Origin: Macrostomum lignano
Taxonomy: Eukaryota
Assembly (NCBI GenBank): GCA_002269645.1
Contig: NIVC01000942.1
Coordinates: 1-64,000 of the forward strand
Direction of reading: 5' to 3'
DNA length: 64,000 nt
Below are positions 3,201 to 63,743 of this stretch, in pieces. The notes beneath the pieces are model-generated. The model worked only from the letters and a program-made list of their open reading frames with translations. It searched no databases and had not been told where the DNA came from. Position numbers and translations under genes: made by a program. Position 1 is the stretch's first letter; every line of letters begins with the position of its first letter.

Positions 3201-4610
3201 GGAGCTGCGCCGTAACGTCGTCAAATTTACGCAGCCCATCCAATCATTTCAGCTATCCATCCTGTACTCAAAGCCAGAGGTCAATCCAGTTAAACTGCTA
3301 TTTGAATTTCTCTCTCCGCTACACCTGTACACCTGGCTGGCCTTGCTCGGCTCCGGCCTTGCATCGGGGCTGGTGCTGGCGGTGCTGCATCGAATTAGCA
3401 GGAACGAACAGCGGCTCAGCTTGTACGAAGCCATCTACGTCGCATTGGGCACGCTGATCCAGGGCGTGAAGACAACGATACCGGATCGCCCGTCAGCACA
3501 GCTGGTGAAACATTGTGATACGCTTGTATTACTGTTCAAATGCTTAATTCTCGATATAATTATAAATTGTGAAATTGCACTCTGATATTTTGCAGATAAC
3601 AATGGTTTTCTGGCTATTTGTGCTCATCTTTCTAATCATCTACGTGACACACTATGCAGCTAAGCGGACTCTGGAAAGAATCCAGATGGAGATCACTGAT
3701 CTCAAGAGCCTCCCGATGCAGGAGGCGTACGAATACGGTACGCTCTTCGGCTCTGTGTACCTGGACTTCTTGAAGCACTCGTATGTCAGGCTGGAGTTGC
3801 TAGCTTACCGGCACATCGCCAACGACCCACATCGTACCCAGCCACGGAACATCAGCCACGCGCTCAGCTTAGTCAGAGGCGGTACTTTTGCATTCATTTA
3901 CAACTCGGCCATGAACCATTACTACTCGAAGATGTTGTGCGACTTTTATGAGACTGGCAGCTTTGGGCAGGACAGCGCGCGCTTGGGACTCCCGGCGAAC
4001 GCGGAGTACGATGATATGATCAATCGAATTATCAATCGACTGGTGAGCAGCGGGGAGCGAGACCTGCTGTACAAAAAGTAAATCGGTTGGTTTGTAAATG
4101 TTTCGGAGTACTTTATGTTATTTAATCAAGCTCCTTGTTTAAACTAGAGTGAGTTATATTGGTTAAGAATATCTATAAATAAAAATTCGTAGAAGTCAAT
4201 GGTAAAGGGTCTGCAAATTTGTACCTATAAGGGCACCCCGATTCAGCAAAAGCAATATGACTCTTGATTTTTACAGGTACTTCAATCCACCCAAAAGCAA
4301 CCTGCCGGACTGCACAAACAATTCTCTACCGCACTCCATCATCAACTGGATTCCCTCGGAGGCAGAAGTTTTCAACACAAAGCGGGGCGCGCTGACCCTT
4401 AACAATAATACCATGGGCATCACCGCCATCAACCTGGCCGTTTGCGTGCTCACCCTGCTGCTGGCGCTCATAGAATTTGCCTGCTTAAAAATCAGGCTGC
4501 AGGTTAGACGCATATGGAATACAGCCCAGAAAAATAGGAGCCTGCGAAAGGCTGCTGCGGCGGCTGCCAAAGAGTACCAGGGCGAGGAGTCGATGGAGTC
4601 GCAAGCCTAG
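279..4610 (+). CDS. Divergent ionotropic glutamate receptor-like subunit A (ATD-S1-M1-M2-M3-S2-M4), multi-exon; the signal-peptide exon was not found
   Basis: Hand-spliced in-frame GT-AG exons: 279-452, 871-1355, 1788-1967, 2056-2181, 2321(or 2234)-2440, 2539-2655, 3067-3504, 3596-4077, 4277-4610. iGluR motifs: RVVTLL|APPFV, RLEGFAMDI, PDGKYG..WGGMVATL, ADMACASMS..R..VKFTQP, M1, YGTL, ALTLNN..GI..LALIEF (M4). Confidence 0.88.
498..790 (+). mobile_element. tRNA-derived SINE, family A, in intron of iGluR-A
   Basis: A box (TAGCCTAGTGG) and B box (GGTTCGATTCCC) head, followed by a body shared with the copies at 1490-1740, 27800-28335 and 44989-45315; A-rich end. Confidence 0.85.
1490..1740 (-). 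mobile_element. SINE family A copy, 5'-truncated
   Basis: Reverse complement of the 498-790 body, running from the B box to the 3' end. Confidence 0.85.
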
Positions 4611-12300: not shown

Positions 12301-15300
12301 TCCATCCTCTCCTCGCTTCTCTCCGACCTCTACTCGCTTCTCTCCATCCTCTAATCCTCGCCTCTCTCTCCTCTCCTTTCCCCCCCCCCTGCCCTTCTAA
12401 GCCAGACTTGCCAGCACGAGAAGCACTTTCAGCGGCGCCTGTCGGTAGTGCTGCAAGACGGCCTCTCGCGAAGTGTCGGTCGGCCTCATCGGACTCAGGC
12501 TGAACCGACCGTCTGTTGAAAACTCGCCCACCTGTACGTGCGGCAAAAGAGAATTCATGACAGAACAAAGCAATATATCAAGCAGTTATATGTCCTTCTT
12601 TTACTACTGTTAGTACACTTTGAGCTGCTAAAGGGCGCCTATTTGCAGCTGACTCACCAGTTCCGGTCGCAGCGGCAAGTTCCGGTAGATGCCGAGGCGC
12701 CAGTTGTCACGAGCGACTGCACCGTCGGGGAGCAGGCGAAATGTTCCCGTCAGCCCGGTGACATTTTTCTCCTGCAGCGTCTGTGGAAGGCATTAATAGA
12801 GCCTTTAAATGCACATACTGCTAATAGTAGTCAGGCTACCTTGCCTTAATCACTTTAGTCACAATAAATGAGCCAATGCACATGCGTGCCTGAATTGCTG
12901 TGCTTTCTTCGAAAGACGTACTCGCAGACCTCGCTTTTTCTCTTCCCATCATTCTCGCCTTTCCCTCCTTCTTGCCTCTCTCCCTCCTTCTCGCCTCTCC
13001 CTTCTTCTCGCCTCTCTCCCTCCTTCTCGCCTCTCTCCCTCCTTCTCGTCACTCCCTTCTTCACGCCTCTCTCCCTCCTTCTCGCCTCTCCCTTCTTCTC
13101 GCCTCTCTCCCTTCTTCTCGCCTCGATCCCTCCTTCTCGCCTCTCCCTTCTTCTCGCCTCTCTCCCTCCTTCTCGTCTCTCCCTTCTTCTCGCCTCTCTC
13201 CCTTCTTCTCGCCTCGATCCCTCCTTCTCGCCTCTCCCTTCTTCTCGCCTCTCTCCCTCCTTCTCGCCTCTCCCTTCTTCTCGCCTTTCTCCCTCCTTCT
13301 CGCCTCTCCCTTCTTCTCGCCTCGCTCCCTCCTTCTCGTCTCTCCCTTCTTCTCGCCTTTCTCCCTCCTTCTCGTCCCTCCCTCCTTCTCGCCTTTCTCC
13401 CTCCTTCTCGCTTCTCTCCCTTCTTCTCGCTTCTCTCCCTTCTTCTCGCCTTTCTCCCTTCTTCTCGCCTCTCCCTTCTTTTCGCCTCGCTCCCTCCTTC
13501 TCGCCTCTCCCTTCTTCTCGCCTCGCTCCCTCCTTCTCGTCTCTCCCTTCTTCTTGCCTCTCTCCCTCCTTCTCGCCTCTCCCTTCTTCTCGCCTCGCTC
13601 CCTCCTTCTCGCCTTTCTCCCTCCTTCTCGTCTCTCCCTTCTTCTCGTCTCTCCCTTCTTCTCGCCTCTCCCTTCTTCTCGCCTCTCCCTCCTTCTCGCC
13701 TCTCCCTCCTTCTCGCCTCTCTCCCTCCTCCTCGCCTCTCTCCCTCCTTCTCGCCTCTCTCCCTCCTTCTCGCCTCTCTCCCTCCTTGTCGCCCCTCTCC
13801 CCTCTCCTTCCGTCCTTTCTCCAGACCAGCCAATTCTAATCTTAATTCCATTCCCAGACTGTCCGACTCAGCTGAATTGATAATAAATGGTCTTACGCCA
13901 TTGCCGCAGGCGAGCTGCCTGACGAACTCGGTCCACACGCTGAGCAGGTCGTACAGCATCACGTGCTCCGTAGTTAGCAGTTTGCGGCCCAATTCCTCAG
14001 TAAAAGGTCCGAACTCCATAGCAGTAACGTTGTCGGCCTCGTTGGCAAACACCAAAGACTCGGTGTCATTGCGCCGCTCGCTACCCACCGCTAAGCCCTT
14101 TGAGGTTCGTGTGTGGTTCAATGAGACTTCTCTACAGTCTTGCAAGTTTTTCTGCATCCCGAATGCAAATTTTATTGAAATAGCAAGTCATGCCTTCGCT
14201 GACAGAACTTGTATTGTTGAACAACAATTGAGGGTTGTGAAAGAGCCTGGGTTGGGGTTGTCCGCACCAAGTTTTGTCTATGGTAAAACCCCCACTATGC
14301 TAAAGTTTGTGCGGACTTCAGCGGCATTTTGCTGTTTCTCGATCATTCTGGGAATGAACCTTCACAAAACGCGCACTTTCTTAATTTTATTGCAGGAACT
14401 TGAGAGGCCGACCATTTTGTCTATCATTACGATAATGCTAAAGCTTGAAGTTTCTTATCTCGAAAAAGCCTGCCTTCAACCCAAAATAGGGATATTTTGA
14501 AATGCCAAGAATGGTTAATTCTGGCCACTTTCTGTCTTGTAAAGAGCATCAAATCCGTCACGATCACCGGTCATTTTACCGGTATAAGCGACAGTCCCAG
14601 CTCAGTCTGCATGCCCCCGGTTGTCCCCCAAAGCTAACCTGAATCTCTCGCTGCAATTTGATTCTTCACAATAGCAGAAAGCGAAGACACTTTATTTACG
14701 CACAAATTTACCAACAGATAAAATCTCTCCTCCATTTGGCTGCGCGTTTTTTGCGATTTTTTTGTGCTTTTCTACGCCGGCGAGTCCGTCAATCCAGTCT
14801 CCCAGCTTCATCGTAAACAGGCTGACAGGGGATGACAGCCGATTTCCCGGCGCTGATTAAAGCCTCGATTTCCTCTTTTTTAAGTAAAAGAAGACAAGCA
14901 AAATTGTTTCTGCTTTTTTCTCTCCTGAACAGCCAGCCGGGCTCCTCAAATCTGATGACACTTTGCCCTAACAAATCTTTCCAAGACAGATGAGGTCTGA
15001 CAGGTGGATGCTGGAGAGTCATTTTCGCCTCCTTGGGGCTGCAGTGGCAAGAAAAACATTTGGCCGGCTTTCTGTCGGCAACTGCGCAGCCGCATCAAGC
15101 CAGCTGAGCTCTTTGTGGCTCGGCTGCTTTCTGGGACCTATTGACTGATATAAATGTAGTTTTAGAATCGGAGATTAGGAATTCACTAACTCCTCATTCA
15201 GAGTATCAGTCAGTTCATTGCAGCACACTGATCACTGACCGTCCTTCTTCATCAGTCATCAGTGAATTCACTCATCCACTTGATTCACTCATCACTCCAT

Positions 15301-17898: not shown

Positions 17899-20800
17899 GA
17901 GTCACTGTCACTGTCACTGTCACTGTCACTGTCACTGTCACTGTTACTGTCACTGTCACTGTCACTGTCACTGTCACTGTCACTGTCACTGTCACTGTCA
18001 CTGTCACTGTCACTGTCACTGTCACTGTCACTGTCACTGTCACTGTCACTGTCCCTGTCACTGTCACTGTCACTGTCACTGTCACTGTCACTGTCACTGT
18101 CACTGTCACTGTCACTGTCACTGTCACTGTCACTGTCACTGTCACTGTCACTGTCACTGTCACTGTCACTGTCACTGTCACTGTCACTGTCACTGTCACT
18201 GTCACTGTCACTGTCACTGTCACTGTCACTGTCACTGTCACTGTCACTGTCACTGTCACTGTCACTGTCACTGTCACTGTCACTGTCACTGTTACTGTTA
18301 CTGTCACTGTCACTGTCACTGTCACTGTCACTGTCACTGTCACTGTCACTGTCACTGTCACTGTCACTGTCACTGTCACTGTCACTGTCACTGTTACTGT
18401 CACTGTTACTGTCACTGTTACTGTCACTGTTACTGTCACTGTCACTGTCACTGTTACTGTCACTGTTACTGTCACTGTTACTGTCACTGTTACTGTCACT
18501 GTTACTGTCACTGTCACTGTCACTGTCACTGTCACTGTCACTGTCACTGTCACTGTCACTGTCACTGTCACTGTTACTGTCACTGTTACTGTCACTGTCA
18601 CTGTCACTGTCACTGTCACTGTCACTGTTACTGTCACTGTCACTGTCACTGTCACTGTCACTGTCACTGTCACTGTCACTGTCACTGTCACTGTCACTGT
18701 CACTGTCACTGTCACTGTTACTGTCACTGTTACTGTCACTGTCCCTGTAACTGTGACTGTCACTGTTACTGTCACTGTCACTGTGACTGTTACTATTACT
18801 GTCACTGTCACTGTCACTGTCACTGTTACTGTCACTGTCACTGTCACTGTCACTGTTACTGTCACTGTTACTGTCACTGTCACTGTCACTGTCACTGTTA
18901 CTGTCACTGTCACTGTCACTGTCACTGTCACTGTCACTGTCACTGTCACTGTCACTGTCACTGTTACTGTCACTGTTACTGTCACTGTCCCTGTAACTGT
19001 GACTGTCACTGTTACTGTCACTGTCACTGTGACTGTTACTATTACTGTCACTGTCACTGTCACTGTCACTGTCACTGTCACTGTCACTGTCACTGTTACT
19101 GTCACTGTTACTGTCACTGTCACTGTCACTGTCACTGTCACTGTCACTGTTACTGTCACTGTCACTGTCACTGTCACTGTTACTGTCACTGTCACTGTCA
19201 CTGTCACTGTCACTGTCACTGTCACTGTCACTGTCACTGTCACTGTCACTGTTACTGTCACTGTTACTGTCACTGTCACTGTCACTGTCACTGTCACTGT
19301 CACTGTTACTGTCACTGTCACTGTCACTGTTACTGTCACTGTCACTGTCACTGTCACTGTTACTGTCACTGTTACTGTCACTGTCACTGTCACTGTCACT
19401 GTCACTGTCACTGTCACTGTCACTGTCGCTGTCACTGTCACTGTTACTGTCACTGTTACTGTCACTGTCCCTGTAACTGTGACTGTCACTGTCACTGTCA
19501 CTGTCACTGTCACTGTCACTGTCACTGTCACTGTTACTGTCACTGTCACTGTCACTGTCACTGTCACTGTCACTGTCACTGTCACTGTTACTGTCACTGT
19601 TACTGTCACTGTCACTGTCACTGTCACTGTCACTGTTACTGTCACTGTTACCGTCACTGTCACTGTCACTGTCGCTGTCACTGTCACTGTTACTGTCACT
19701 GTTACTGTCACTGTCCCTGTAACTGTGACTGTCACTGTTACTGTGACTGTGACTGTGACTGTTACTATTACTGTCACTGTCACTGTCACTGTCACTGTCA
19801 CTGTCACTGTCACTGTCACTGTCACTGTCACTGTCACTGTCACTGTCACTGTCACTGTCACTGTCACTGTCACTGTCACTGTCACTGTCACTGTCACTGT
19901 CACTGTCACTGTCACTGTCACTGTCCCTGTCACTGTCACTGTCACTGTCACTGTCACTGTCACTGTCACTGTCACTGTCACTGTCACTGTCACTGTCACT
20001 GTCACTGTCACTGTCACTGTCACTGTCACTGTCACTGTCACTGTCACTGTCACTGTTACTGTTACTGTCACTGTCACTGTCACTGTCACTGTCACTGTCA
20101 CTGTCACTGTCACTGTCACTGTCACTGTCACTGTCACTGTTACTGTCACTGTTACTGTCACTGTTACTGTCACTGTCACTGTCACTGTCACTGTCACTGT
20201 TACTGTCACTGTTACTGTCACTGTTACTGTCACTGTTACTGTCACTGTTACTGTCACTGTCACTGTCACTGTCACTGTCACTGTCACTGTCACTGTCACT
20301 GTCACTGTCACTGTCACTGTTACTGTCACTGTTACTGTCACTGTCACTGTCACTGTCACTGTCACTGTCACTGTCACTGTTACTGTCACTGTTACTGTCA
20401 CTGTCCCTGTAACTGTGACTGTCACTGTTACTGTCACTGTCACTGTGACTGTTACTATTACTGTCACTGTCACTGTCACTGTCACTGTTACTGTCACTGT
20501 CACTGTCACTGTCACTGTTACTGTCACTGTTACTGTCACTGTCACTGTCACTGTCACTGTTACTGTCACTGTCACTGTCACTGTCACTGTCACTGTCACT
20601 ATCACTGTCACTGTCACTGTCACTGTCACTGTCACTGTCACTGTCACTGTTACTGTCACTGTTACTGTCACTGTCCCTGTAACTGTGACTGTCACTGTTA
20701 CTGTCACTGTCACTGTGACTGTTACTATTACTGTCACTGTCACTGTCACTGTCACTGTTACTGTCACTGTCACTGTCACTGTCACTGTTACTGTCACTGT

Positions 20801-22815
20801 TACTGTCACTGTCACTGTCACTGTCACTGTCACTGTCACTGTCACTGTCACTGTCACTGTCACTGTTACTGTCACTGTTACTGTCACTGTCACTGTCACT
20901 GTCACTGTCACTGTCACTGTTACTGTCACTGTTACTGTCACTGTTACTGTCACTGTCCCTGTAACTGTGACTGTCACTGTTACTGTTACTGTCACTGTCA
21001 CTGTCACTGTCACTGTCACTGTCACTGTCACTGTCACTGTCACTGTCACTGTCACTGTCACTGTCACTGTCACTGTTACTGTCACTGTTACTGTCACTGT
21101 TACTGTCACTGTTACTGTCACTGTCACTGTCACTGTTACTGTCACTGTTACTGTCACTGTTACTGTCACTGTTACTGTCACTGTTACTGTCACTGTCACT
21201 GTCACTGTCACTGTCACTGTCACTGTCACTGTCACTGTCACTGTCACTGTCACTGTTACTGTCACTGTTACTGTCACTGTCACTGTCACTGTCACTGTCA
21301 CTGTCACTGTTACTGTCACTGTCACTGTCACTGTCACTGTCACTGTCACTGTCACTGTCACTGTCACTGTCACTGTCACTGTCACTGTCACTGTTACTGT
21401 CACTGTTACTGTCACTGTCCCTGTAACTGTGACTGTCACTGTTACTGTCACTGTCACTGTGACTGTTACTATTACTGTCACTGTCACTGTCACTGTCACT
21501 GTTACTGTCACTGTCACTGTCACTGTCACTGTTACTGTCACTGTTACTGTCACTGTCACTGTCACTGTCACTGTTACTGTCACTGTCACTGTCACTGTCA
21601 CTGTCACTGTCACTGTCACTGTCACTGTCACTGTCACTGTCACTGTCACTGTCACTGTCACTGTTACTGTCACTGTTACTGTCACTGTCCCTGTAACTGT
21701 GACTGTCACTGTTACTGTCACTGTCACTGTGACTGTTACTATTACTGTCACTGTCACTGTCACTGTCACTGTTACTGTCACTGTCACTGTCACTGTCACT
21801 GTTACTGTCACTGTTACTGTCACTGTCACTGTCACTGTCACTGTCACTGTCACTGTCACTGTCACTGTCACTGTCACTGTCACTGTTACTGTCACTGTTA
21901 CTGTCACTGTCACTGTCACTGTTACTGTCACTGTCACTGTCACTGTCACTGTTACTGTCACTGTTACTGTCACTGTCACTGTCACTGTCACTGTCACTGT
22001 CACTGTCACTGTCACTGTCACTGTCACTGTCACTGTTACTGTCACTGTTACTGTCACTGTCACTGTCACTGTCACTGTCACTGTCACTGTTACTGTCACT
22101 GTTACTGTCACTGTTACTGTCACTGTCCCTGTAACTGTGACTGTCACTGTTACTGTCACTGTCACTGTCACTGTCACTGTCACTGTCACTGTCACTGTCA
22201 CTGTCACTGTTACTGTCACTGTTACTGTCACTGTCACTGTCACTGTCACTGTCACTGTCACTGTCACTGTCACTGTCGCTGTCACTGTCACTGTTACTGT
22301 CACTGTTACTGTCACTGTCCCTGTAACTGTGACTGTCACTGTCACTGTCACTGTCACTGTCACTGTCACTGTCACTGTCACTGTTACTGTCACTGTCACT
22401 GTCACTGTCACTGTCACTGTCACTGTCACTGTCACTGTTACTGTCACTGTTACTGTCACTGTCACTGTCACTGTCACTGTCACTGTCACTGTTACTGTCA
22501 CTGTTACCGTCACTGTCACTGTCACTGTCGCTGTCACTGTCGCTGTCACTGTCACTGTTACTGTCACTGTTACTGTCACTGTCCCTGTAACTGTGACTGT
22601 CACTGTTACTGTGACTGTGACTGTGACTGTTACTATTACTGTCACTGTCACTGTCACTGTCACTGTCACTGTCACTGTCACTGTCACTGTCACTGTCACT
22701 GTTACTGTCACTGTTACTGTCACTGTCACTGTCACTGTCGCTGTCACTGTCACTGTCACTGTCACTGTCACTGTCACTGTCACTGTTACTGTTACTGTTA
22801 CTGTCACTGTCACTA
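17899..22815. repeat. 4.9-kb (GTCACT)n hexamer satellite with variant-defined higher-order structure
   Basis: Continuous GTCACT/GTTACT units with recurring variants (GTCCCT-GTAACT-GTGACT, ATTACT, GTCGCT, GTTACC). Confidence 0.98.
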
Positions 22816-24039: not shown

Positions 24040-25490
24040 TTCTGTCATGTCTCTTCTATCCTGTCTCCGATCCCGTCTCTTCCATCCCGTCTTTCCTATC
24101 CCATCTCTCCCATCCCGTCTCTACTATCCTGTCTCCCATCCCGTCTCTTCCATCCCGTCTCTTCCATCCCGTCTCTTCCATCACGTCTCTTCCATCCCGT
24201 CTCTTCCATCCCGTCTCTCCCATCCCGTCTCTCCCATCCCGTCTCTACTATCCTGTCTCCCATCCCGTCTCTTCCATCCCGTCTCTTCCATCCCGTCTCT
24301 CCCATCCCGTCTCTACTATCCTGTCTCCCATCCCGTCTCTTCCATCCCGTCTCTTCCATCACGTCTCTTCCATCCCGTCTCTTCCATCACGTCTCTTCCA
24401 TCCCGTCTCTCCCATCCCGTCTCTTCCATCCCGTCTCTTCCATCCCGTCTCTTCTATCCCGTCTCTTCCATCCCGTCTCTCCCATCCCGTCTCTCCCATC
24501 CTGTCTCTTCCATCCCGTCTCTTCCATCCCGTCTCTTCCATCCCGTCTCTCCCATCCCGTCTCTCCCATCCTGTCTCTTCCATCCCGTCTCTTCCATCCC
24601 GTCTCTTCCATCCCGTCTCTTCTATCCCGTTTATTCCATCTCATCTCTCCTATCCCGTCTCTCCCATCCCGTCTCTCCTATCTTATCTCTTCCTTCCTGT
24701 CTCTTCCATCCCATCTCTCCCATCCTGTCTCTTCTATCCTGTCTCTTTCTTCCCATTTCTTCCATCCCATCTCTCCCATCCCATCTCTCCCATACTTTCT
24801 GTCCCATCCCACCTCTCCTATCCCATCTCTCTCATCCCGTCTCTTCCATCCCGTCTCTCCCATCCCGTCTCTCCCATCCTGTCTCTTCCATCCCGTCTCT
24901 TCCATCCCGTCTCTTCCATCCCGTCTCTTCTATCCCGTTTATTCCATCTCATCTCTCCTATCCCGTCTCTCCCATCCCGTCTCTCCTATCTTATCTCTTC
25001 CTTCCTGTCTCTTCCATCCCATCTCTCCCATCCTGTCTCTTCCATTCTTCTCCCATCCTGTCTCTTCTATCCTGTCTCTTTCTTCCCATTTCTTCCATCC
25101 CATCTCTCCCATCCCATCTCTCCCATACTTTCTGTCCCATCCCACCTCTCCTATCCCATCTCTCTCATCCCGTCTCTTCCATCTCGTCTCTCCCATCCCG
25201 TCTCTCCCATCCCGTCTCTCCCATCTCATCTCTTCCATCTTAACTCTCCCATCCCGTCTCTTCCATCCCGTCTCTTCCATCTCGTCTCTCCCATCCCGTC
25301 TCTCCCATCCCATCTCTTCCATCTTATCTCTCCCATCCCGTCTCTCCCATCTCATCTCTTCCATCTTAACTCTCCCATCCCGTCTCTTCCATCCCGTCTC
25401 TCCCATCCCATCTCTTCCATCCCGTCTCTCCCATCCCGTCTCTTCCATCCCGTCTCTCCCATCCCATCTCTCCCATCCCATCTCTCCTAT
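24040..25490. repeat. 14-bp minisatellite CATCCCGTCTCTTC/CATCCCGTCTCTCC
   Basis: About 100 degenerate tandem units; source of the PVSSIPSLPSRL-type ORFs. Confidence 0.95.
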
Positions 25491-27799: not shown

Positions 27800-28335
27800 A
27801 CCCTCAGTTACCCCAGCAAATGCTGACACCAATTTTTACAGCTGGGTGAACTGAAGCAATGCGGAGTTAAGCTTCTTGCTCAAGGACACCAATTGATCCA
27901 GTGGGATGGGAATCGAAAGGGGGGCTGTAGCCCAGCGGTAGCGCAGCTGCTCTGGTGTGCCAGCGACCCAGGCTCGATTCCAAGTGCAGTCACATTAATT
28001 TGGGGCTGAATTGGAATCTCGGCTTGGCTCTGCTCGTGCAATTAACGGCCTTGAGAGCCAACCCCCCAAGGCGCAGTGAAGTGTACATGCCTAACGATAA
28101 TATAAAGTTAGTGCCGCTGTACACTCCTGTGTGAGTGTGTGCCTGCGTACGTATCCGCGCGCTTGTATGCCTGCTCAGGGGAGTCGGCGGAATGGGCAGT
28201 AATGCCTCTCGCCGGTTGTGTGCCTATGTCGCTTAAAGTGCGCCAGGGTGCACACAGCCCCCTTGCCTCTAATAAAAAAAATGGGAATCGAACCCCCGCA
28301 CCTTCAAGTCGTTAGTCCGACGCTAGTCTACAATC
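27800..28335 (-). mobile_element. SINE family A copy interrupted by a family B SINE
   Basis: The family A body (27800-27917) resumes at 28281 with the rest of the tRNA-like head. Confidence 0.8.
27919..28280 (+). mobile_element. Full-length tRNA-derived SINE family B with poly(A) tail and TSD
   Basis: GGGGGCTGTAGCCCAGCGGTAG head, GGCTCGATTCC B box and AATAAAAAAAA tail; target duplication ATGGGAATCGAA at 27906-27917 and 28281-28292. Confidence 0.85.
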
Positions 28336-29096: not shown

Positions 29097-29653
29097 GTAA
29101 GGAGAAATCAGGAATCTTCTATTCGGGTGGGACATCAATTAAGCGGTGATAAATTTTATTCCCCAATAGTAAAATCCCCGCGGTTGCGCAGTTCTTCATT
29201 GCATCGGTGGAGTAGAAAAACTTTGCTCTTTTGGACGCTGCCGGCTTTCTGTTATTTCTCGCGATGAAGTTAATTATGGCTCTGCCGGCTCTCCGTCTGA
29301 TTCTCCGCCCCGCTTCCTACCGGCGGCCGGACCTGCCGTCTCCCCATGGGGATAATTCCGGCTAGGGGGAACGATACGGGGGGAATTATATTGTTTTTTA
29401 TAGACAGATTTTTCGGACTGCCTCGAATTTGCCGCTGAGCGAAGGAGGGCGGGAGGTGAAAATTGGTGGAACAGAAAAAAATACGAGCTTCTCCGTGTCT
29501 CCGGGCGCCTCGATGACTCATCGCCTGGCACCGAAAATAAGTCTAGGGACCAAATTTCTTTAAGGGGGTGATGACCCGGCCCCATAAAACCTCCGGTTTG
29601 CATAGCGCAGCATAATAACTGACTGCCCTCTCCGCTGCCAACTCCTCGCAGTC

Positions 29654-40661
<11,008 letters not shown>

Positions 40662-41883
40662 ACTGAGAGACGTGAGGCTCTGAGGAACTCGTGACGATTC
40701 GCAGTCGGAGGCTACTTGTAGATTTCCAAGCTGTCACTTTTCCGCGGCCATCGGGGGGAGTTGGTAAATGAGATCAGAGTGCCATTTCGCTGCAGAATCT
40801 CTGTTACACAGCAATAGTAGATTGTAAATTACTTAAAATCCTGGAGGACCTTGCTTAATTTCTCTTTGTCGATGCAGTTGTTATTATTGCTTTAGCGAGA
40901 TGCACGCTTGGCCCGCGAAGGTCTGCAAACAAAAGTCCACAGTCGAGCTTTTTCAAGCGCATCCGCACGAGATTTTATTCGAAGTTGCTAATAGCATTCG
41001 AAATCTTTGTTTTACACCACTTTAAATATTGGCTATGAATTTCACTTGTTGTATGGACGAACTGCAGACTGTATTCTGCGCATAGAATTTCTCTTTTGTT
41101 ATATTCTTGTACATGGCCCACACAAATTAAACATATAGGTGTCGTGCATAGACCAGTAGGCATGAAATTTTGTGTTTCAAAGCTTCTTTATCCGACTGTG
41201 GCATTGTGCATTCACTGTGCTTCAATTATTTGAAATGCTGCTTTGTCGAGTTAATCAACCTAAATAAAATACATGATTGTTGTTACTGCTTGATTAACCA
41301 CGGTGGTTCATTAACCACTAAATTCAGCTTATAAAATGCTTAAAAGTTTTATCTATAACTTATTTCAAACTTTCAATTCGTGATGAAGGGGATGTGTAAC
41401 TTGCGAGCTAAGTACAAAATGTTGCCAAACAGTACCCTGGATCGGCTGTCCTACATCACCGAATGGAAGAAACAGATACCTCAGAAATTCAGGTAGATGC
41501 GGGAACATCATGCAAACGCAAAAGAAGATAAAATTTCAAATAAATATCCGCACATCTGTCGATAAACTTCTCTGACGGCTGTTCAGGCGCGATCCGCGGA
41601 GAAAAACCTGCGATGACAGTTTTGACAGCGATCCGCGATCCGCAGTCATCCCCGCGGTGACAATGACACAAATAGAAGACCGAGAATACAGCTGCAAAGC
41701 TTTCAGAAGTTTCTAATCTTCGCTGAAAATACTTGCCACTGATTGCTGGCTTGTCACTGAATTCTGAGAAGCGACATGCTTAGTGTCACCCGCCCGAGCT
41801 CGCGCGTGACCCAGCTGCTCAGCGCATGGATATAGATCTAAGCTGGCATCGGCTGACAACTGACAGACACGAGCGTTCCTGTG

Positions 41884-41890
41884 TATAAAA
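41884..41890 (+). promoter_or_regulatory. Candidate TATA box of the cysteine-rich peptide gene
   Basis: TATAAAAG about 100 nt upstream of the ATG at 41988. Confidence 0.55.
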
Positions 41891-41987
41891 GAGAAAACAT
41901 TGGGCCGTCTGTTTTGAAGCAGCCATCTCCCAAGTCTCCCTTCTGCATGTTGATACAAAAGCTTCCAAAACTCCAAAAGCTCTGGCC

Positions 41988-42328
41988 ATGTCTGCTAGCA
42001 AAGCTGCTGTGATCATCTTCCTGCTCAGTTGGCTGATTTCCGCTGGCCAGGCGGTGCGGCGCCCCAGCCCGATGGAGCTGTCCCGAACGGAGGTCAAGCG
42101 AATTCGCATGGACAGTGAGTTGACAGCTCGTAATGCTTTTAGGAACAAAACAGCAGAACTTTTTTTCTGACCCACGGTTCACTTTCTGTTCCAGCGCACC
42201 AAGCTTTCGTGCCGTTCTGCAGCTACCGATGCAAGGTGCACTTCGGGCCGGAGCGCCAGTGCATCGGCTACTTCAATCCGAAGACGAGCGTCTGCTATTG
42301 CGTGTGCACCAAACCGGCTCCGGCCTGA
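41988..42328 (+). CDS. Small secreted cysteine-rich peptide precursor (86 aa), defensin/mytilin-like
   Basis: Exon 41988-42114 (A|GTGAGT), 80-nt intron, exon 42195-42328 (TTCTGTTCCAG|). Product: MSASKAAVIIFLLSWLISAGQA-VRRPSPMELSRTEVKR-IRMDTHQAFVPFCSYRCKVHFGPERQCIGYFNPKTSVCYCVCTKPAPA*. Confidence 0.85.
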
Positions 42329-42607: not shown

Positions 42608-43342
<735 letters not shown>

Positions 43343-48181: not shown

Positions 48182-51100
48182 ATGTCCAAGAGAAACCCAA
48201 CATCGGAATTGAATCACGAAAACTGGGATCAGGAGGACGAGAAGGAAGATGTGAGTTGGCTAATTGGGACAGATCTGCTCAGCGGTGAACGCATTTGATT
48301 CTCGCGCCACCACCCTTGGTTTGATTCCATGCGCGACCGAATTCATTGGGGCTTGTGCGCGGAGATTGGCCGGGGTTGCCACCCATGAGGGCCTAACCCT
48401 CTCTCCACTCTCCCTCTCTGCCCCTATCCACTCTGCCTCTGCCTCTCTCCACTCTCCCTCTCTGCCCCTATCCACTCTGCCTCTGCCTCTCTCCACTCTC
48501 CCTCTCTGCCCCTAACCACTCCCTCTCCCTCTCTGCCCCTATCAACTCCCTCTGCCTCTCTCCACTCTCCCTCTCTGCCCCTATCCACTCCCTCTCCCTC
48601 TCTGCCCCTATCCACTCCCTCTGCCTCTCTCCACTCTCCCTCTCTGCCCCTATCCACTCCCTCTGCCTCTCTCCACTCTCCCTCTCTGCCCCTATCCACT
48701 CCCTCTGCCTTTCTGCCCCTATCCACTCCCTCTCCCTCTCTGCCCCTTTTCACTCCCTCTGCCTCTCTCCTTCTCTGCCCCTATCCACTCCCTCCCTGCC
48801 TCTCCACTCTCCCTCTCTCCCTCTGCCTCTCCCTCCCCGCCTCTCTCCACTCTCCCTCTCTGCCTCTCTCCAACCACCCTCCACTCTCCCTCAAGCTCCT
48901 GCGAATATGCGAATATGATAATTATCATTATTAATGAGATTTACAATTCTTGTGTCTATCTAAGAAAACATATTCCAACTGTTTCCAACTAATTCTCACT
49001 AACCTAGGCTGGCCGTTTCAAGACCGCGTCGCAGGATGTGCTGAAGGGTCGCGAAATTCGAGTTGCTAAGCGGCGAGCTCACGATAGTGAGGTGAGAGCT
49101 GTTTGACTCAATTATTTTGTCTGTTCTTTTCTACATTATTTATGGTAAGGAATTGTGAAGTTTGGGTATTGTAAAGGTTAAGAATTATGAAGGTTGGGGA
49201 TTGTGAAAGTTCGGGATTGTGAAGGTTGGGGATTGTGAAGGTTGGGAATTGTGAAAGTTCGGGATTGTGAAGATTGGGGATTGTGAAGATTGGGGATTGT
49301 GAAGATTGGGGAATGTGAAGCTTGGGGATTGTGAAGATTGGGGACTGTGAAGCTTGGGGATTGTGAAGATTGGGGACTGTGAAGCTTGGGGATTGTGAAG
49401 ATTGGGACTGTGAAGATCGGGACTGTGAAGATTGGGGATTGTGAAGATCGGGATTGTGAAGATTGGGACTGTGAAGATCGGGACTGTGAAGATTGGGGAT
49501 AGTGAAGATCAGGATTGTGAAGATTGGGACTGTGAAGATCGGGACTGTGAAGATTGGGGATTGTGAAGATCGGGATTGTGAAGATTGGGGACTGTGAAGC
49601 TTGGGGATTGTGAAGATTGGGACTGTGAAGATCGGGACTGTGAAGATTGGGGATTGTGAAGATCAGGATTGTGAAGATTAGGGACTGTGAAGCTTGGGGA
49701 TTGTGAAGATTGGGACTGTGAAGATCGGGACTGTGAAGATTGGGGATTGTGAAGATCGGGACTGTGAAGGCTGGGATTGTGAAGCTTGGGGACTGTGAAG
49801 ATTGGGGACTGTGAAGATTGGGGACTGTGAAGCTTGGGGACTGTGAAGATTGGGACTGTGAAGATTAGGATTGTAAAGATCGGGGCTGTGAAGGCTGGGA
49901 TTGGAATAGTTGGATATTAGTTTTAAGCCCATGAGAGCGAGAAACAGCTTGAAATTCAAATGCCCAGGGAATATGCAGTTAATATGGTGAGTCTGAACGG
50001 CCCATGTTGCGGACAAACCATGCTCACAGTTATACAGCAAAACTCTTCTCTGACCCGGCAGGGCAAAGGCACTGGCGGGCTCTTCAAGTCGTTCACTGGC
50101 TTCACCGGCTTCGGTGCCCAGGCCGCGTCGGCCACGACAGCCCCCTCTTTGGCTTTCAACTTCTCGGCCAACGCCACCGCCGCCACCACCACCGATTCGC
50201 TGGCGGCCTCGTCGACGACAACAACGGCGAAATCGGCAACGCCCGCCGCCGATCCGAATGCCGCCCACCTGGCCCAGCTGAAGGCGCTGAACCAGTCCGT
50301 GCTGCGCTGGATTCAGAGTCACGTGGCTGACAGCCCCTACTGCGTTCTCACGCCCGTGTTCCGCGACTACGAGCGCCACCTGGCCGACATCGAGCGCCGG
50401 CACCCGTACGTGGAGTCGTCGGCAACTGCAAATTCGTCGACTGGAACGGCGGCGGCTGCGGCGGCGACTCCGACGACGACTTCAACAACGCTGGCAGCGC
50501 CTTTGAAGGCGTCGACAAGTCCGGCAAAGTTCAACTTCTCCGCCGCGACTACGTCCACCGCGGCATCGGCACCGACGACTGCTGCCACCACGGCCACCAC
50601 GATGGCGCCTGCGATGCCTGCCACGTTTAGCTTCAACTCGCAGCAGCCGCAGAAGCCGGCGACTGACGGTGCGGCCACAACGGCAACATTCTTTTTTGGC
50701 GCGTCAGCCAAGTCAACGACGGCTTCGTCGACTTCAACAACGACAACGACGGCGACGTCGGCAACGTCAACGACTGGCTTGACGACAGCGTCGAGTGGGT
50801 TCACAGGATTCAAATTCAACTCAGGGCCGGGGGCGGCGCTGCCGCAACAGCCACCTGGTGGCCTGTCCCTGTTCGGGCCTGGCGGTTTCGCCGCCGCCTC
50901 CGCCGCGGCTGCCTCGAGCTCCCAGGAGGAGCAGGAAGACGAAGAATACGAGCCGCCGAAGCCGGAGACGCGGGAGATTCGCGAGGACGGCGCCGTGTTC
51001 AGCCAGAAGTGCAAGCTGTTCTATATGGCCGCCGGCGAGGCCAAACAGTGGAAGGAGAAGGGCGTCGGCTGCGTGCACGTCAAGCCGGCGGAGGCGGAGG

Positions 51101-51351
51101 GCGGCAGCCGGGCGCAGTTGATCGTGCGGGCGGACAACACCCTGGGCACCATCATGCTCAACACTCTGGTTACTAAGGACATGAAGCTGTCGGTTGCTAA
51201 GAACAATCTCAGTTTGGCTTGTCCGCCGAATCCGCCAATGCCGAAGTCGGCCAATGACGACCGGCGCATTGTGCCGTTCCTGGTCCGGCTGAAGACCGAG
51301 GCCGACGCCAAGGAGCTGCTGGCCAAGATTGACGGGCTGAGGGAGGCCTGA
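48182..51351 (+). CDS. NUP50: Nuclear pore basket protein Nup50
   Basis: Exons 48182-48250 (MSKRNPTSELNHENWDQEDEKED), 49008-49091 (AGRFKTASQDVLKGREIRVAKRR) and 50038 or 50062-51351. Contains FG-like motifs, the conserved LKALNQSVLRWI..TPVFRDYERHL block and a C-terminal RanBD1 (KLFY..WKEKGVG..LIVRADNTLG). Confidence 0.93.
48400..48880. repeat. CT-rich minisatellite (CCACTCTCCCTCTCTGCCCCTAT-like) in Nup50 intron 1
   Basis: Tandem degenerate units. Confidence 0.9.
49175..49900. repeat. 15-16-bp minisatellite GGGATTGTGAAGATT(G) in Nup50 intron 2
   Basis: About 45 tandem units. Confidence 0.95.
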
Positions 51352-52677: not shown

Positions 52678-58506
<5,829 letters not shown>

Positions 58507-58524
58507 ACTGACCGCTTACCGCGA

Positions 58525-60885
58525 TCTCAAAGAATGAGCACCCAGATCTCAAGGATGAGCACCCAGATCTCAAGGATGAGTACCCAGATCTCAAGTATGA
58601 GCACCCAGATCTCAAGGATGAGCACCCAGATCTCAAGGATGAGTACCCAGATCTCAAGTATGAGCACCCAGATCTCAAGGATGAGTACCCAGATCTCAAG
58701 GATGAGCACCCAGATCTCAAAGGATGGGCACTCAGATCTCAAAGGATGGGCACTCAGATCTCAAAGGATGGGCACTCAGATCTCAAAGGATGAGCACCCA
58801 GATCTCAAGGATGAGCACCCAGATCTCAAGGATGAGTACCCAGATCTCAAGTATGAGCACCCAGATCTCAAGGATGAGTACCCAGATCTCAAGGATGAGT
58901 ACCCAGATCTCAAGAAATGAGCACCCAGATCTCAAAGGATGGGCACTCAGATCTCAAAGGATGATCACCCAGATCTCAAGAAATGAGCACCCAGATCTCA
59001 AAGGATGGGCACCCAGATCTCAAAGGATGAGTACCCAGATCTCAAAGGATGGGCACCCAGATCTCAAAGGAACGAGCACCCAGATCTCAAAGAATGAGCA
59101 CCAGATCTCAAGGAATGAGTACCCAGATCTCAAAGAATAAGCACCCAGATCTCAAAGGATGGGCACTCAGATCTCAAAGGATGAGCACCCAGATCTCAAG
59201 GATGAGCACCCAGATCTCAAGGATGAGTACCCAGATCTCAAGTATGAGCACCCAGATCTCAAGGATGAGTACCCAGATCTCAAGGATGAGTACCCAGATC
59301 TCAAGAAATGAGCACCCAGATCTCAAAGGATGGGCACTCAGATCTCAAAGGATGATCACCCAGATCTCAAGAAATGAGCACCCAGATCTCAAAGGATGGG
59401 CACCCAGATCTCAAAGGATGAGTACCCAGATCTCAAAGGATGGGCACCCAGATCTCAAAGGAACGAGCACCCAGATCTCAAAGAATGAGCACCAGATCTC
59501 AAGGAATGAGTACCCAGATCTCAAAGAATAAGCACCCAGATCTCAAAGGATGAGCACCCTGATCTCAAGGAATAAGCACCAGATCTCAAAGAATGAGCAC
59601 TCAGATCTCAAAGGATGAGCACCCAGATCTCAAAGGATGAGCACCCAGATCTCAAGGAATAAGCACCAGATCTCAAAGAATGAGTACCCAGATCTCAAAG
59701 AATAAGCACCCAGATCTCAAAGGATGAGCACCCTGATCTCAAGGAATAAGCACCAGATCTCAAAGAATAAGCACCAGATCTCAAAGAATGAGCACTCAGA
59801 TCTCAAAGGATGAGCACCCAGATCTCAAAGGATGAGCACCCAGATCTCAAGGAATAAGCACCAGATCTCAAAGAATGAGCACTCAGATCTCAAAGGATGA
59901 GCACCCAGATCTCAAAGGATGAGCACCCAGATCTCAAGGAATAAGCACCAGATCTCAAAGAATGAGCACCCAGATCTCAAGGAATAAGCACCAGATCTCA
60001 AAGAATGAGCACTCAGATCTCAAAGGATGAGCACCCAGATCTCAAAGGATGAGCACCCAGATCTCAAGGAATAAGCACCAGATCTCAAAGGATGAGCACC
60101 CAGATCTCAAGGAATAAGCACCAGATCTCAAAGGATGAGCACCCAGATCTCAAGGAATAAGCACCAGATCTCAAAGAATGAGCACTCAGATCTCAAAGGA
60201 TGAGCACCCAGATCTCAAAGGATGAGCACCCAGATCTCAAGGAATAAGCACCAGATCTCAAAGGATGAGCACCCAGATCTCAAGGAATAAGCACCAGATC
60301 TCAAAGGATGAGCACCCAGATCTCAAGGAATAAGCACCAGATCTCAAAGAATAAGCACCCAGATCTCAAGGAATAAGCACCAGATCTCAAAGAATAAGCA
60401 CCCAGATCTCAAAGAATGAGCACCCAGATCTCAAAGAATAAGCACCCAGATCTCAAAGAATGAGCACCCAGATCTCAAAGAATGAGCACCCAGATCTCAA
60501 AGAATAAGCACCCAGATCTCAAAGAATGAGCACTCAGATCTCAAAGGATGAGCACCCAGATCTCAAAGGATGAGCACCCAGATCTCAAGGAATAAGCACC
60601 AGATCTCAAAGAATGAGCACCCAGATCTCAAGGAATAAGCACCAGATCTCAAAGAATAAGCACCAGATCTCAAAGAATGAGCACTCAGATCTCAAAGGAT
60701 GAGCACCCAGATCTCAAAGGATGAGCACCCAGATCTCAAGGAATAAGCACCAGATCTCAAAGAATGAGCACCCAGATCTCAAAGAATGAGCACCCAGATC
60801 TCAAAGGATGATCACCCAGATCTCAAAGGATGAGTACCCAGATCTCAAGGAATGAGCACCCAGATCTCAAGGAACGAGCACCCGA
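58525..60885. repeat. 2.3-kb 21-22-bp minisatellite CCAGATCTCAA(A)GGATGAGCAC immediately after the DDX39-like stop codon
   Basis: About 105 units, each with AGATCT; internal 391-bp duplication. Confidence 0.97.
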
Positions 60886-61194: not shown

Positions 61195-61690
61195 TGCAGC
61201 TAGGTGCTAAATAGTTGGCAGATAGATGCTAATTAGTTGGCAGATAGATGCTAAATTAGGTGGCAGATAGATGCTAATTAGGTGGCAGATGGATGCTAAT
61301 TAGGTCGCAGCTGGATGCTAATTAGGTGACAGCTGGATGCTAATTAGGTGACAGCTGGATGCTAGTTAGGTGGCAGATAGATGCTAATTAGGTCGCAGCT
61401 GGATGCTAATTAGGTGGCAGATAGATGCTAATTAGGTGGCAGATGGATGCTAATTAGGTCGCAGCTGGATGCTAATTAGGTGGCAGATAGATGCTAATTA
61501 GGTGGCAGATAGATGCTAATTAGGTGGCAGATAGATGCTAATTAGGTGGCAGCTGGATGCTAATTAGGTGGCAGATACATGTAGATGCTAATTAGGTGGC
61601 AGCTGGATGCTAATTAGGTGGTTGATAGATGCTAATTAGGTGGCAGATGCATTTAGATGCTAATTAGGTGGCAGCTAGATGCTAATTACC
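61195..61690. repeat. 22-bp minisatellite GATGCTAATTAGGTGGCAGATA
   Basis: About 22 units ending just upstream of the AMDHD2 acceptor. Confidence 0.95.
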
Positions 61691-61706
61691 ACCTGAAGTG
61701 TTCCAG

Positions 61707-62879
61707 GCAGCCGAGGCCGGGCAGATTACCTGCTTCCACAACTGCTTGTCGCTCCGCGGCGGCCGACTCACGCCGCAGGATGTCTGGGTGCGCGACGGCC
61801 GTGTTCTGGACTCTCTGAGCGTCTTTTATGGCGAACGGCGCAGCCCCTCCAAGTTTGTGGACTGCGGCGGGCACATCCTGGCTCCCGGCTTCATCGATGT
61901 GCAGGTGGGTGGCCTTCTGTGCTGCTGTGAAGTGAGGATGCTGATATATTTAGATATTAGTAAAAGATAGATAGATGCGGATATTAGTAGATAGATACAG
62001 ATATTAGTAGATAGATGCGGATATTAGTAGATAGATACAGATATTAGTAGATAGATGCGGATATTAGTAGATAGATACGGATATTAGTAGATAGATACGG
62101 AACGGATAGTAATAGATAGATGCGGATATTAGTAGATAGATGCGGATATTAGCAGATAGATGCGGATATTAGTAGATAGATGCGGATATTAGTAGATAGA
62201 TGCGGATATTAGCAGATAGATGCGGATATTAGCAGATAGATGCGGATATTAGTAGATGGATACAGATATTAATGGATAGATGCAGATATTGGTAGATACA
62301 TACGGATATTAGTAGATAGATGTGGATATTAGTAGATAGATGCCGATATTAGTAGACAGATACGGATAGTAATGGATAGATGCGGATATTAGTAGATAGA
62401 TGCGGATATTAGTAGATACATACGGATATTAGTAAATAGATACGGATACGCTTATAGATGGTTCTGTTCCAGAGGTCTGATTGCGCCTCCATTCTTGCTA
62501 GGTGAACGGCGGCCTTGGCCACGACTTCTCCGTCATCGCCAGCGACGCTGATTTCCGCCAATCCGTGGACGCCGTGGCTCGCGACCTCGTCAGGCGCGGC
62601 GTCACCGCCTTCTGCCCGACCCTCATCAGCTGCGATTCGTCCATCTACCGCCGGCTGCTTTCGCCGGTGCCGCCTCCCCAGCTGAAGACGCCCGGCTCGC
62701 CAGAGGTAGCCGCAGTGCTCGGCCTGCACCTGGAGGGGCCCTTCATCAGCGCCGACAAGTGCGGCATGCATCCCAAGCGGTGCACCAAGCAGGACTGCCG
62801 GGCCGGCTTGGCCGACCTATGCAGCGTCTACGGGACTGAGGACTTCAGGTATGCGGGCTTGCGGGCCTGTCTGCTTGCC

Positions 62880-62926
<47 letters not shown>

Positions 62927-62933
62927 GTCTGTG

Positions 62934-62970
<37 letters not shown>

Positions 62971-62973
62971 GCC

Positions 62974-63014
<41 letters not shown>

Positions 63015-63743
63015 GCCTGTCTGTCTGTCTGCCTGTCTGTCTGTCTGTCTGTCTCAAAGGCTCGAGCTCACTACCGCAGCCAGGTTGCCATCGTCACGCT
63101 GGCCCCCGAGCTGCCCGGCGCCTTAGACGCAGTCCGTGGCCTCCACAACCTTGGCGTCTGCGTTAGCCTTGGCCACTCGGTGGCCTCTCTGGAAGTTGGC
63201 GAAGCCGCGGTGGCCGCCGGGGCCAGGATGCTGACGCACCTGTTCAGCGCCATGGGCCCCTTCCACCACCGACAGCCGCACCTGCCCGGCCTGCTGGTCA
63301 GCGAGGCCGCCCGCCAGCCCGTGTACTACGGCCTCATCGCCGACTGCGACCACACCCACCCGGCCGCGCTACGCCTCGCCTGGCGATCCAGCTTCCCGGG
63401 CCTCATCCTGGTTAGCGACGCCTGCCCGGCGCGCGGCCTTCCCGACGGCCGGCACTCCTTCGGCGGCGTTGACGTCGACGTCGCTGGTGGCCTCTGTCGG
63501 CTGGCCGGCTTGGACACCTTGGCCGGCAGCATGGTGACACTGGCCGACTGCGTCCAGCGGATGCACCTATCCGGCGTCTGCCCGCCCGAGCGGACTCTCG
63601 AGGCGGCCTCGCTTCACCCGGCCGACATGCTGGGCCTGCGGGACCGCGGCCGCATCGAGCCGGGCGCTCTGGCCGACTTTGTGCTGCTTGACTCCGACCT
63701 GCGGCTGTTGCGCACCTTTGTGCGCGGCCTGTCCGTTGAGTAA
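61707..63743 (+). CDS. AMDHD2: N-acetylglucosamine-6-phosphate deacetylase (NagA/AMDHD2); start codon uncertain
   Basis: Exons 61707-61904, 62502-62848 and 63080-63743. Motifs LAPGFIDVQ|VNGG, GVTAFCPT, LHLEGPFI, VTLAPE, SLGHS, THLFSAM, IADCDHTHP, LVSDA, LAGS, ASLHPA, G.IEPGALADFV; the metal ligands and catalytic Asp appear retained. Confidence 0.95.
61945..62450. repeat. 20-bp minisatellite GATGCGGATATTAGTAGATA
   Basis: Tandem units in AMDHD2 intron 1. Confidence 0.95.
62870..63055. repeat. (TCTG)n microsatellite
   Basis: Fills most of AMDHD2 intron 2. Confidence 0.97.

Follow-up and report, generated by a model that had tools for sequence, protein, structure and literature searches.

Organization of the locus

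The window analyzed here is a 64,000-nucleotide (nt) stretch of contig NIVC01000942.1 (positions 1 to 64,000 of the forward strand) from the genome of the free-living marine flatworm Macrostomum lignano. At 41988-42328 (+) it carries a real, apparently unannotated two-exon protein-coding gene, whose predicted product is a small secreted peptide with six cysteines. Translation starts at the ATG at 41988 (+; context CTGGCCATGT), and the 127-nt coding sequence (CDS) of exon 1 (41988-42114, +) ends at a phase-1 junction after ATG GAC A. An 80-nt intron follows (42115-42194, +; GTGAGT...CTGAC...TTCCAG), with donor ACA/GTGAGT and acceptor TTCCAG/CG, and has a CTGAC branch-like site and a pyrimidine tract before the TTCCAG acceptor. 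Exon 2 (42195-42328, +, including the TGA stop at 42326-42328) supplies all six cysteines and the greater part of the mature peptide. A TATA-like box, TATAAAAG, can be read from the sequence at 41884-41891 (+), 104 nt 5' of the ATG, and may act as the promoter. An earlier note on this DNA had proposed this gene, and direct reading and translation place the TATA box, ATG, intron, exons and stop at the coordinates given there. The note had also held that the intron hides the gene from lists of open reading frames (ORFs), and this is borne out: the unspliced frame reaches a stop after 60 amino acids (aa), has zero cysteines and is not on record in protein collections. Minus-strand ORFs of 114-118 aa over the locus were treated as mechanical, with no homolog or other support.

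The spliced product is an 86-aa precursor, MSASKAAVIIFLLSWLISAGQA followed by VRRPSPMELSRTEVKR and IRMDTHQAFVPFCSYRCKVHFGPERQCIGYFNPKTSVCYCVCTKPAPA, and translation yields the same three parts as the earlier note had described. The 22-aa signal peptide MSASKAAVIIFLLSWLISAGQA (41988-42053, +) has a core whose hydrophobicity reaches a mean Kyte-Doolittle value of 2.9, and small residues at -3/-1 (G-Q-A), a pattern that by the -3/-1 rule suggests cleavage after Ala22. It is followed by a 16-aa propeptide, VRRPSPMELSRTEVKR (42054-42101, +), that ends in the dibasic pair Lys-Arg (KR), and by the 48-aa mature peptide IRMDTHQAFVPFCSYRCKVHFGPERQCIGYFNPKTSVCYCVCTKPAPA (42102-42325, +, interrupted by the intron). 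The cysteines of the mature peptide are spaced C-x3-C-x9-C-x10-C-x-C-x-C and its net charge (K+R-D-E) is +4, again as previously read.

Relationship to the Mlig020375 genes

An exhaustive HMMER search with the exon-2 translation against 1.84 billion representative proteins returned one convincing relative, P0121 (E 4.8e-11, 61% identity), a 96-aa M. lignano protein deposited as PAA68142/PAA77746 (BOX15_Mlig020375g1/g3). A third copy, Mlig020375.g2 (P0124), is near-identical to P0121, and the records for Mlig020375.g1/g2/g3 comprise GenBank PAA68142, PAA77746 and PAA67319 and UniProt A0A1I8H4X4 and A0A267F2J5. Under the automatic naming of UniProt the paralog is an 'INVERT_DEFENSINS / Invertebrate defensins family profile domain-containing protein', a name that implies a match to PROSITE PS51378.

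The Mlig020375 precursor follows the same plan as the window precursor, with a signal peptide that keeps the G-x-A motif (LGLA), a propeptide ending in KR and a C-terminal 48-aa peptide. The two precursors are 57% identical over their full length, including across the exon junction, and 63% identical in the mature part, where both have six cysteines at identical spacing and 48 residues after KR. Both also contain the block KRIRMDTH[QR]AFVPFC, which spans the window exon 1/exon 2 junction; encoded partly in each exon, it can be produced only by the proposed splice. On contigs NIVC01000725.1 and NIVC01001419.1 (L001 and L002; GCA_002269645.1), the paralog intron lies at the same codon position and in the same phase (phase 1 after ...RMD; ACA/GTGAGT...CAG/CT), and a 19-nt donor-site sequence, ATTCGCATGGACAGTGAGT, is identical in the window gene and the paralog.

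Beyond these shared features the copies have diverged. The introns are 80 nt in the window gene and 331 nt in the paralog, with unrelated sequences; the propeptide of the window copy is 8 aa shorter, through an 8-aa indel, and has diverged except for KR; 18 of the 48 mature residues differ; and the net charge is +4 in the window peptide against +3 in the paralog. A TATA-like box, TATATAAGAGAGAG, stands ~83 nt 5' of the paralog ATG, against 104 nt in the window gene. A GGCTGACA(G/A) motif was also seen by eye at window 41850-41870, just 5' of the TATA box, and both up- and downstream of the paralog (L001 9815-9835 and 10640-10650), but it does not rise above chance in an alignment test. The window locus is distinct from the Mlig020375 loci: when the peptide was compared by tBLASTn with the window, L001 and L002, no extra or tandem copies emerged, and there is no synteny between the loci.

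A two-sequence profile search of the protein collections returned only the P0121 cluster, with no orthologs from other species, and a word-index search with the spliced precursor gave no match. Thus, judged by sequence comparison, the window gene is a diverged paralog of Mlig020375.g1-g3, in a family that is restricted to Macrostomum in the collections searched. The earlier note had proposed a search for a paralog family, which the HMMER protein search has now found, and had called the gene a candidate new family. The novelty holds for the window copy, which is apparently unannotated, but not wholly for the family, since its 57%-identical paralog group is already in GenBank and UniProt under the automatic defensin label.

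Some further matches were set aside. P0122 and P0123 (E 1e-6 to 1e-5) are long multi-repeat proteins whose scores sum 4-6 short C[VI]G[VI]FNP.T..FSC stretches, which we judged to be a coincidental hairpin motif and not homology. A Pfam YacG hit at E 0.001 scored 19 bits, below the cut-off of 25.5, and stems from an FCSxRCK string shared with a bacterial cytoplasmic zinc finger, and a Sha_B_N hit (E 0.02-0.05) is sub-threshold and confined to the paralog. P0125 (UniProt A0A1I8I6D2, 400 aa, 'Apple domain-containing protein') is an older M. lignano model into which most of the Mlig020375 precursor, up to its fourth cysteine, has been fused, and is probably a mis-merged gene model.

Coding constraint and expression

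Between the window gene and the paralog, the proportion of differing synonymous sites is near saturation (pS 0.71), against 0.28 for nonsynonymous sites (pN), and the ratio of nonsynonymous to synonymous divergence (dN/dS) from these two sequences is ~0.16 overall; for the mature part it is 0.22. The promoter, intron and 3' flank of the window gene, aligned with those of the paralog, gave no score above shuffled controls, and similarity is confined to coding sequence. Base composition follows the same boundaries: GC content at third codon positions (GC3) is 0.78 in the spliced CDS and 0.74 in a neighbouring bona fide exon, with an overall GC content of 0.42 for the intron and of 0.39 for the 3' flank, both of non-coding composition.

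These data bear directly on whether the locus could be a chance ORF, in which a signal-like start, a GT..AG pair and a set of cysteines came together by accident. The short ORF length, and nothing else, speaks for such an accident; homology to P0121 at E 4.8e-11 runs over both exons and the junction, the intron position is the same, and composition switches at the exon boundaries, all of which make it wildly improbable. Because paralog homology across both exons is joined by the same intron position, the low dN/dS, coding-only similarity and the composition, a chance ORF is ruled out and long-term purifying selection on the gene is shown.

The Mlig_3_7 annotation of GCA_002269645.1 was built from RNA sequencing (RNA-seq) (PMC5730564), and the homologous junction of the paralog is therefore probably supported by transcripts; we infer that the GenBank Mlig identifiers are tied to that annotation. 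Expression of the window copy is presumed, with no sign of it in the collections searched. For neither paralog did the literature and its supplements, searched for Mlig020375, Macrostomum defensins and expression data, yield anything usable.

Predicted fold

An AlphaFold2 model of the exon-2 peptide (mature residues 6-48, 43 residues; three-sequence alignment) has a mean predicted local distance difference test (pLDDT) score of 82.3. In exon-2 numbering it consists of a helix at 4-16 (FVPFCSYRCKVHF, which holds CxxxC) and strands at 22-27 (CIGYFN) and 32-37 (SVCYCV, which holds CxCxC); by the DSSP assignment of secondary structure, helix 4-16 contains C8 and C12, and strand 32-37 contains C33, C35 and C37. 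The model of the paralog precursor has the same helix-strand-strand topology, with a pLDDT of 87-91 in the mature domain.

The cysteine-stabilized alpha-beta (CS-alpha-beta, or cis-defensin) fold is defined by two parallel disulfides that tie the last strand to the helix (PMC7203481). With CxxxC in the helix and CxC in the final strand, the topology predicted for the window peptide is CS-alpha-beta-like, and the signature of CxxxC plus CxC that the earlier note had recognized thus reappears in the model as a helix with a two-stranded hairpin after it. The register predicted for this hairpin sets Cys22 opposite Cys37. Because these two residues face each other, the simplest pairing would be C8-C33, C12-C35 and C22-C37 (exon-2 numbering), equivalent to C13-C38, C17-C40 and C27-C42 of the mature peptide.

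Proposed processing and function

Taken together, these results lead us to favor, with moderate confidence, the reading that the locus is a real, diverged Mlig020375 paralog encoding a CS-alpha-beta-like secreted peptide that most likely serves as a host-defence (antimicrobial) effector. Under this proposal, removal of the single 80-nt phase-1 intron would give the mRNA, and the 86-aa product would enter the secretory pathway, where the signal peptide would be cut after Ala22. Three disulfides would form, and a proprotein convertase would cut after the conserved Lys-Arg and release a 48-aa cationic peptide of net charge +4. Its alpha-helix would pack on the beta-hairpin, with CxxxC bonded to the first two cysteines of CxCxC in the last strand and a third disulfide running from the first-strand cysteine to the last cysteine of CxCxC. 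In invertebrates, peptides that combine secretion, dibasic processing, a high disulfide content, cationic charge and a CS-alpha-beta-like design are most often host-defence peptides; because the window product is modestly cationic and is predicted to be secreted, KR-processed, disulfide-rich and CS-alpha-beta-like, host defence is the best hypothesis for its role. The automatic defensin name of the paralog in UniProt and a weak but non-random similarity to mytilin B, considered below, also speak for the proposal.

A number of observations weigh against this proposal, and the first group concerns expression. An out-of-frame upstream ORF of 21 codons with a weak start context (TTCTGCATGT; 41947-42012, +) begins ahead of the main ATG and overlaps it; its ATG at 41947 would lie in the presumed 5' untranslated region if transcription begins ~30 nt past the TATA box, and the 5' region of the paralog has no upstream ATG. 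A canonical AATAAA was not found within 700 nt downstream of the window gene; it was likewise not found for paralog contig L001, although the gene there is annotated. A collection of 5.8 billion clusters holds no protein from the window copy, though the RNA-based annotation of the species is present there, whereas the Mlig020375 paralog is annotated three times.

Together with a retrotransposon fragment that starts 300 nt downstream of the stop, these observations would suit a silent or decaying duplicate of Mlig020375, in which the frame is intact and transcription or translation has been lost. We consider such a loss improbable. The ORF is unbroken, the intron has a canonical donor, acceptor and branch-like site, the six cysteines, the KR site and the 48-aa mature length have been kept, GC3 is at coding level, and the annotated paralog contig shares the absence of AATAAA. 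A dN/dS of ~0.2 with saturated synonymous sites further argues that most of the divergence accumulated under constraint, a two-sequence ratio of this kind being compatible with a recent loss.

The second group of opposing observations concerns the assignment of the fold. In Pfam the spliced precursor had no significant family match and no match to Defensin_2 at E up to 10; a PDB sequence search with the precursor gave no significant match, and one with a profile built from both mature peptides gave 0 matches; hhalign against seven PDB-verified CS-alpha-beta defensins returned a probability of 2.3%, with the cysteines out of register; and Foldseek found no match with E <1 in the PDB for either model, a search with little power for 43-residue queries. 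The comparison with defensins by profile and structure that the earlier note had suggested has thus given no significant placement in any defensin family. Classical six-cysteine defensins (among them insect defensin A, 1ICA, lucifensin, 2LLD, and MGD-1, 1FJN; Defensin_2; PS51378) have an N-terminal C1 before CxxxC, bonded to C4, which the window peptide lacks, and the alignments behind both models hold 3-4 sequences.

The third group bears on function rather than fold. The best-conserved segment of the precursor comprises the 12 residues before the first cysteine, which is atypical of antimicrobial peptides and could indicate receptor binding, and the KR site lacks an Arg at P4; both features are equally compatible with signalling or another secretory role. 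CS-alpha-beta-like scaffolds have been reused for toxins, channel blockers and signals, and the same gene and fold might accordingly yield a hormone or other signalling peptide, a reproductive product of seminal fluid or prostate, or a secretion of adhesive or other glands. A KR site without Arg at P4 is of the neuroendocrine-convertase type; IRMDTH.AFVPF, directly after the cleavage site, is the most conserved block between the paralogs, a pattern common in receptor ligands; the net charge is merely +3 to +4; and the family appears to be restricted to Macrostomum in the collections searched. Among Macrostomum proteins, those that are secreted, fast-evolving and lineage-restricted are often related to reproduction (PMC7336406, PMC5977470). 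Nevertheless, we judge a non-immune role to be possible but rather unlikely: no positive link of the family with neurons or prostate has emerged, invertebrate peptides of cationic CS-alpha-beta-like design are antimicrobial more often than not, and Mlig020375 was not found in the supplementary text of germline/neoblast and positional RNA-seq studies, as far as that text, which may be incomplete or use other identifiers, extends.

The host-defence reading touches a reported gap. In 2023 a survey covering 33 flatworm species, with both M. lignano assemblies among the genomes, concluded that CS-alpha-beta peptides are not encoded in flatworms and called their absence surprising (PMC10414684); the sequences of the present family were not found in those parts of its supplements that could be searched. 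The Mlig020375 paralog is public under its automatic defensin label and appears to be undiscussed in the searchable literature, and the window copy appears to be unannotated. A bolder proposal, which we advance only tentatively, is that the window gene and Mlig020375 encode the first true host-defence peptides of the CS-alpha-beta (cis-defensin) type in Platyhelminthes, which would overturn the conclusion of that survey; that their three disulfides have been rewired, with the N-terminal cysteine replaced by a cross-strand bond to the third cysteine of CxCxC; and that the window copy is an immune paralog kept silent until induced.

If both the fold and the defence role are true, the family would fill the reported flatworm gap, and homology searches would have missed it because of its altered cysteine framework. 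It would also provide the first candidate cysteine-rich immune effector of M. lignano, a species that is transgenic and tractable by RNA interference, so that the effector could be tested directly. If the product is instead a signal or a reproductive protein, it still represents a lineage-restricted secreted peptide family under purifying selection. In either case, a gene missing from the annotation has been flagged.

Genomic context

The sequence of the window is eukaryotic, and tandem repeats are very abundant in it. Directly upstream of the peptide gene lies a multi-exon ARID3/dead-ringer gene (~29650-40660, +), with ARID exons at 36781-36858, 38416-38601 and 39416-39541 (+) and a last exon at 40561-40660 that encodes ...MEINGLMYHGVLFAQPKRH. 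The assembled exons match M. lignano A0A1I8GWD8 at E 2.7e-179 and, gene-model gaps aside, by eye differ from it by one substitution in the first exon; two short stretches of the window exons, SSITSAAFTLRTQ and FNGDSG, are missing from the UniProt model. Among the top matches there was no GenBank Mlig_3_7 protein for the ARID3 gene. This near-identity, with that of a dispersed repeat shared with M. lignano contigs (below), places the window in M. lignano.

The peptide gene begins ~1.3 kb downstream of the ARID3 stop on the same strand, and ends 300 nt upstream of a fragment that looks like the 3' end of a non-long terminal repeat (non-LTR) retrotransposon. This fragment is a 206-aa ORF (42629-43249, +) with an RNase H tail (PF00075, E 1.5e-4, sub-threshold) and a Cys/His-rich C-terminal region. 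A search for flanking inverted or direct repeats that would point to membership of the peptide gene in a mobile element found none.

LTR-retrotransposon remnants occupy 9054-10740 (+), with a gag-like zinc knuckle ORF at 9054-9551 and a reverse transcriptase-RNase H region at 10216-10740 (PF17919, E 2.3e-16). A dispersed repeat of 344 nt is present at window 27939-28282, L001 19472-19813 and L002 13090-13429 (96% identical), and a diverged copy (68%) lies at window 7120-7295. One tandem array (17901-22814, 4.9 kb) consists of 409 copies of a 12-nt unit (GTCACTGTCACT) with 94% matches, and gives rise to artefactual ORFs of 1,600-1,770 aa on both strands. Micro- and minisatellites (periods 4-167 nt) form unusually dense arrays, several of them in ARID3 introns, at 12939-13801, 24049-25485, 32838-33582, 35561-36619, 38630-39344, 48397-48872, 49152-49893, 53224-54636, 57167-57995, 58523-60883 and 61196-62448, and with the 4.9-kb array make up a large share of the window.

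A large exon at 49960-51351 (+) encodes a RanBP1-domain protein that is Nup50/RanBP3-like (PF00638, E 4.8e-11), with Ala/Thr/Ser-rich FG-like repeats. An amidohydrolase-family ORF at 62502-63743 (+) resembles N-acetylglucosamine-6-phosphate deacetylase; its frame continues through a (CTGT)n microsatellite at 62867-63054, which is probably an intron. Two ORFs resemble fragments of ionotropic glutamate receptors (ligand-gated ion channels), one at 3569-4081 (+) with a sub-threshold Lig_chan match (E 8.6e-5), and the other at 7943-8461 (-), of similar sequence with no Pfam match.

Comparison with defensins, ASABF and mytilin

The window peptide shares several elements with classical invertebrate defensins. 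Its CxxxC-x9-C spacing is that of CAAHC-x9-C in insect defensin A, a CxC in the last strand is common to both, and insect defensin precursors, like the window precursor, have a propeptide that ends in a dibasic site. It differs in its extra C-terminal cysteine, which gives CxCxC in place of the C5xC6 of the classical forms, and in its hairpin loop, which has 10 residues against a consensus of 4-7. In the fold searches the sole disulfide-rich peptide returned was ASABF (PDB 2D56), a CS-alpha-beta peptide of nematodes that has eight cysteines; it aligned over 36 columns with a root-mean-square deviation of 3.5 Å, a match that is not significant (E 9.5, template modelling (TM) score 0.23-0.35).

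Mytilin B (PDB 2EEM, sequence verified), an antimicrobial CS-alpha-beta peptide of the bivalve Mytilus, shares several sequence motifs with the window peptide. Both have an initial CxxRCKxH, a GY[FY] that follows the middle cysteine and a CYCxC near the end, and both are cationic with a helix and hairpin topology, which in the window peptide is predicted. BLASTP of the mature peptide against mytilin B, a single hand-picked comparison, gave 12/34 identities at E 0.007, and the Smith-Waterman score has p 0.001 against full shuffles and p 0.03 against shuffles with the cysteines fixed (0.02 for the paralog). Mytilin B has eight cysteines and four disulfides where the window peptide has six cysteines, and its loop lengths differ. 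The mytilin precursor consists of a signal peptide, the mature peptide and a C-terminal extension (PMC11767717), whereas the window precursor has an N-terminal propeptide and ends in the mature peptide.

Because similarity with the cysteines fixed reaches merely p 0.02-0.03, common descent with mytilin cannot be claimed; the resemblance is a lead and not evidence of membership, and the window peptide is not a mytilin. The earlier note had described it as a mytilin-like defence peptide outside bivalves, of which the flatworm host, outside the bivalves, stands, while the link to mytilin is weak in view of the E value of 0.007, the cysteine-fixed p of ~0.02-0.03, the six cysteines and the opposite precursor layout. 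Its observation that two mytilin cysteines are missing is upheld by the alignment to 2EEM, in which Cys3 (Cys10) corresponds to a Phe in the window peptide and Cys8 (Cys34) has no counterpart. In mytilin the disulfides pair 2-27, 6-29, 10-31 and 15-34. If this pairing is right, the loss of Cys10 and Cys34 would leave unpaired precisely the two cysteines that face each other in the predicted hairpin, and their union in the third disulfide of the window peptide would represent a coherent rewiring.

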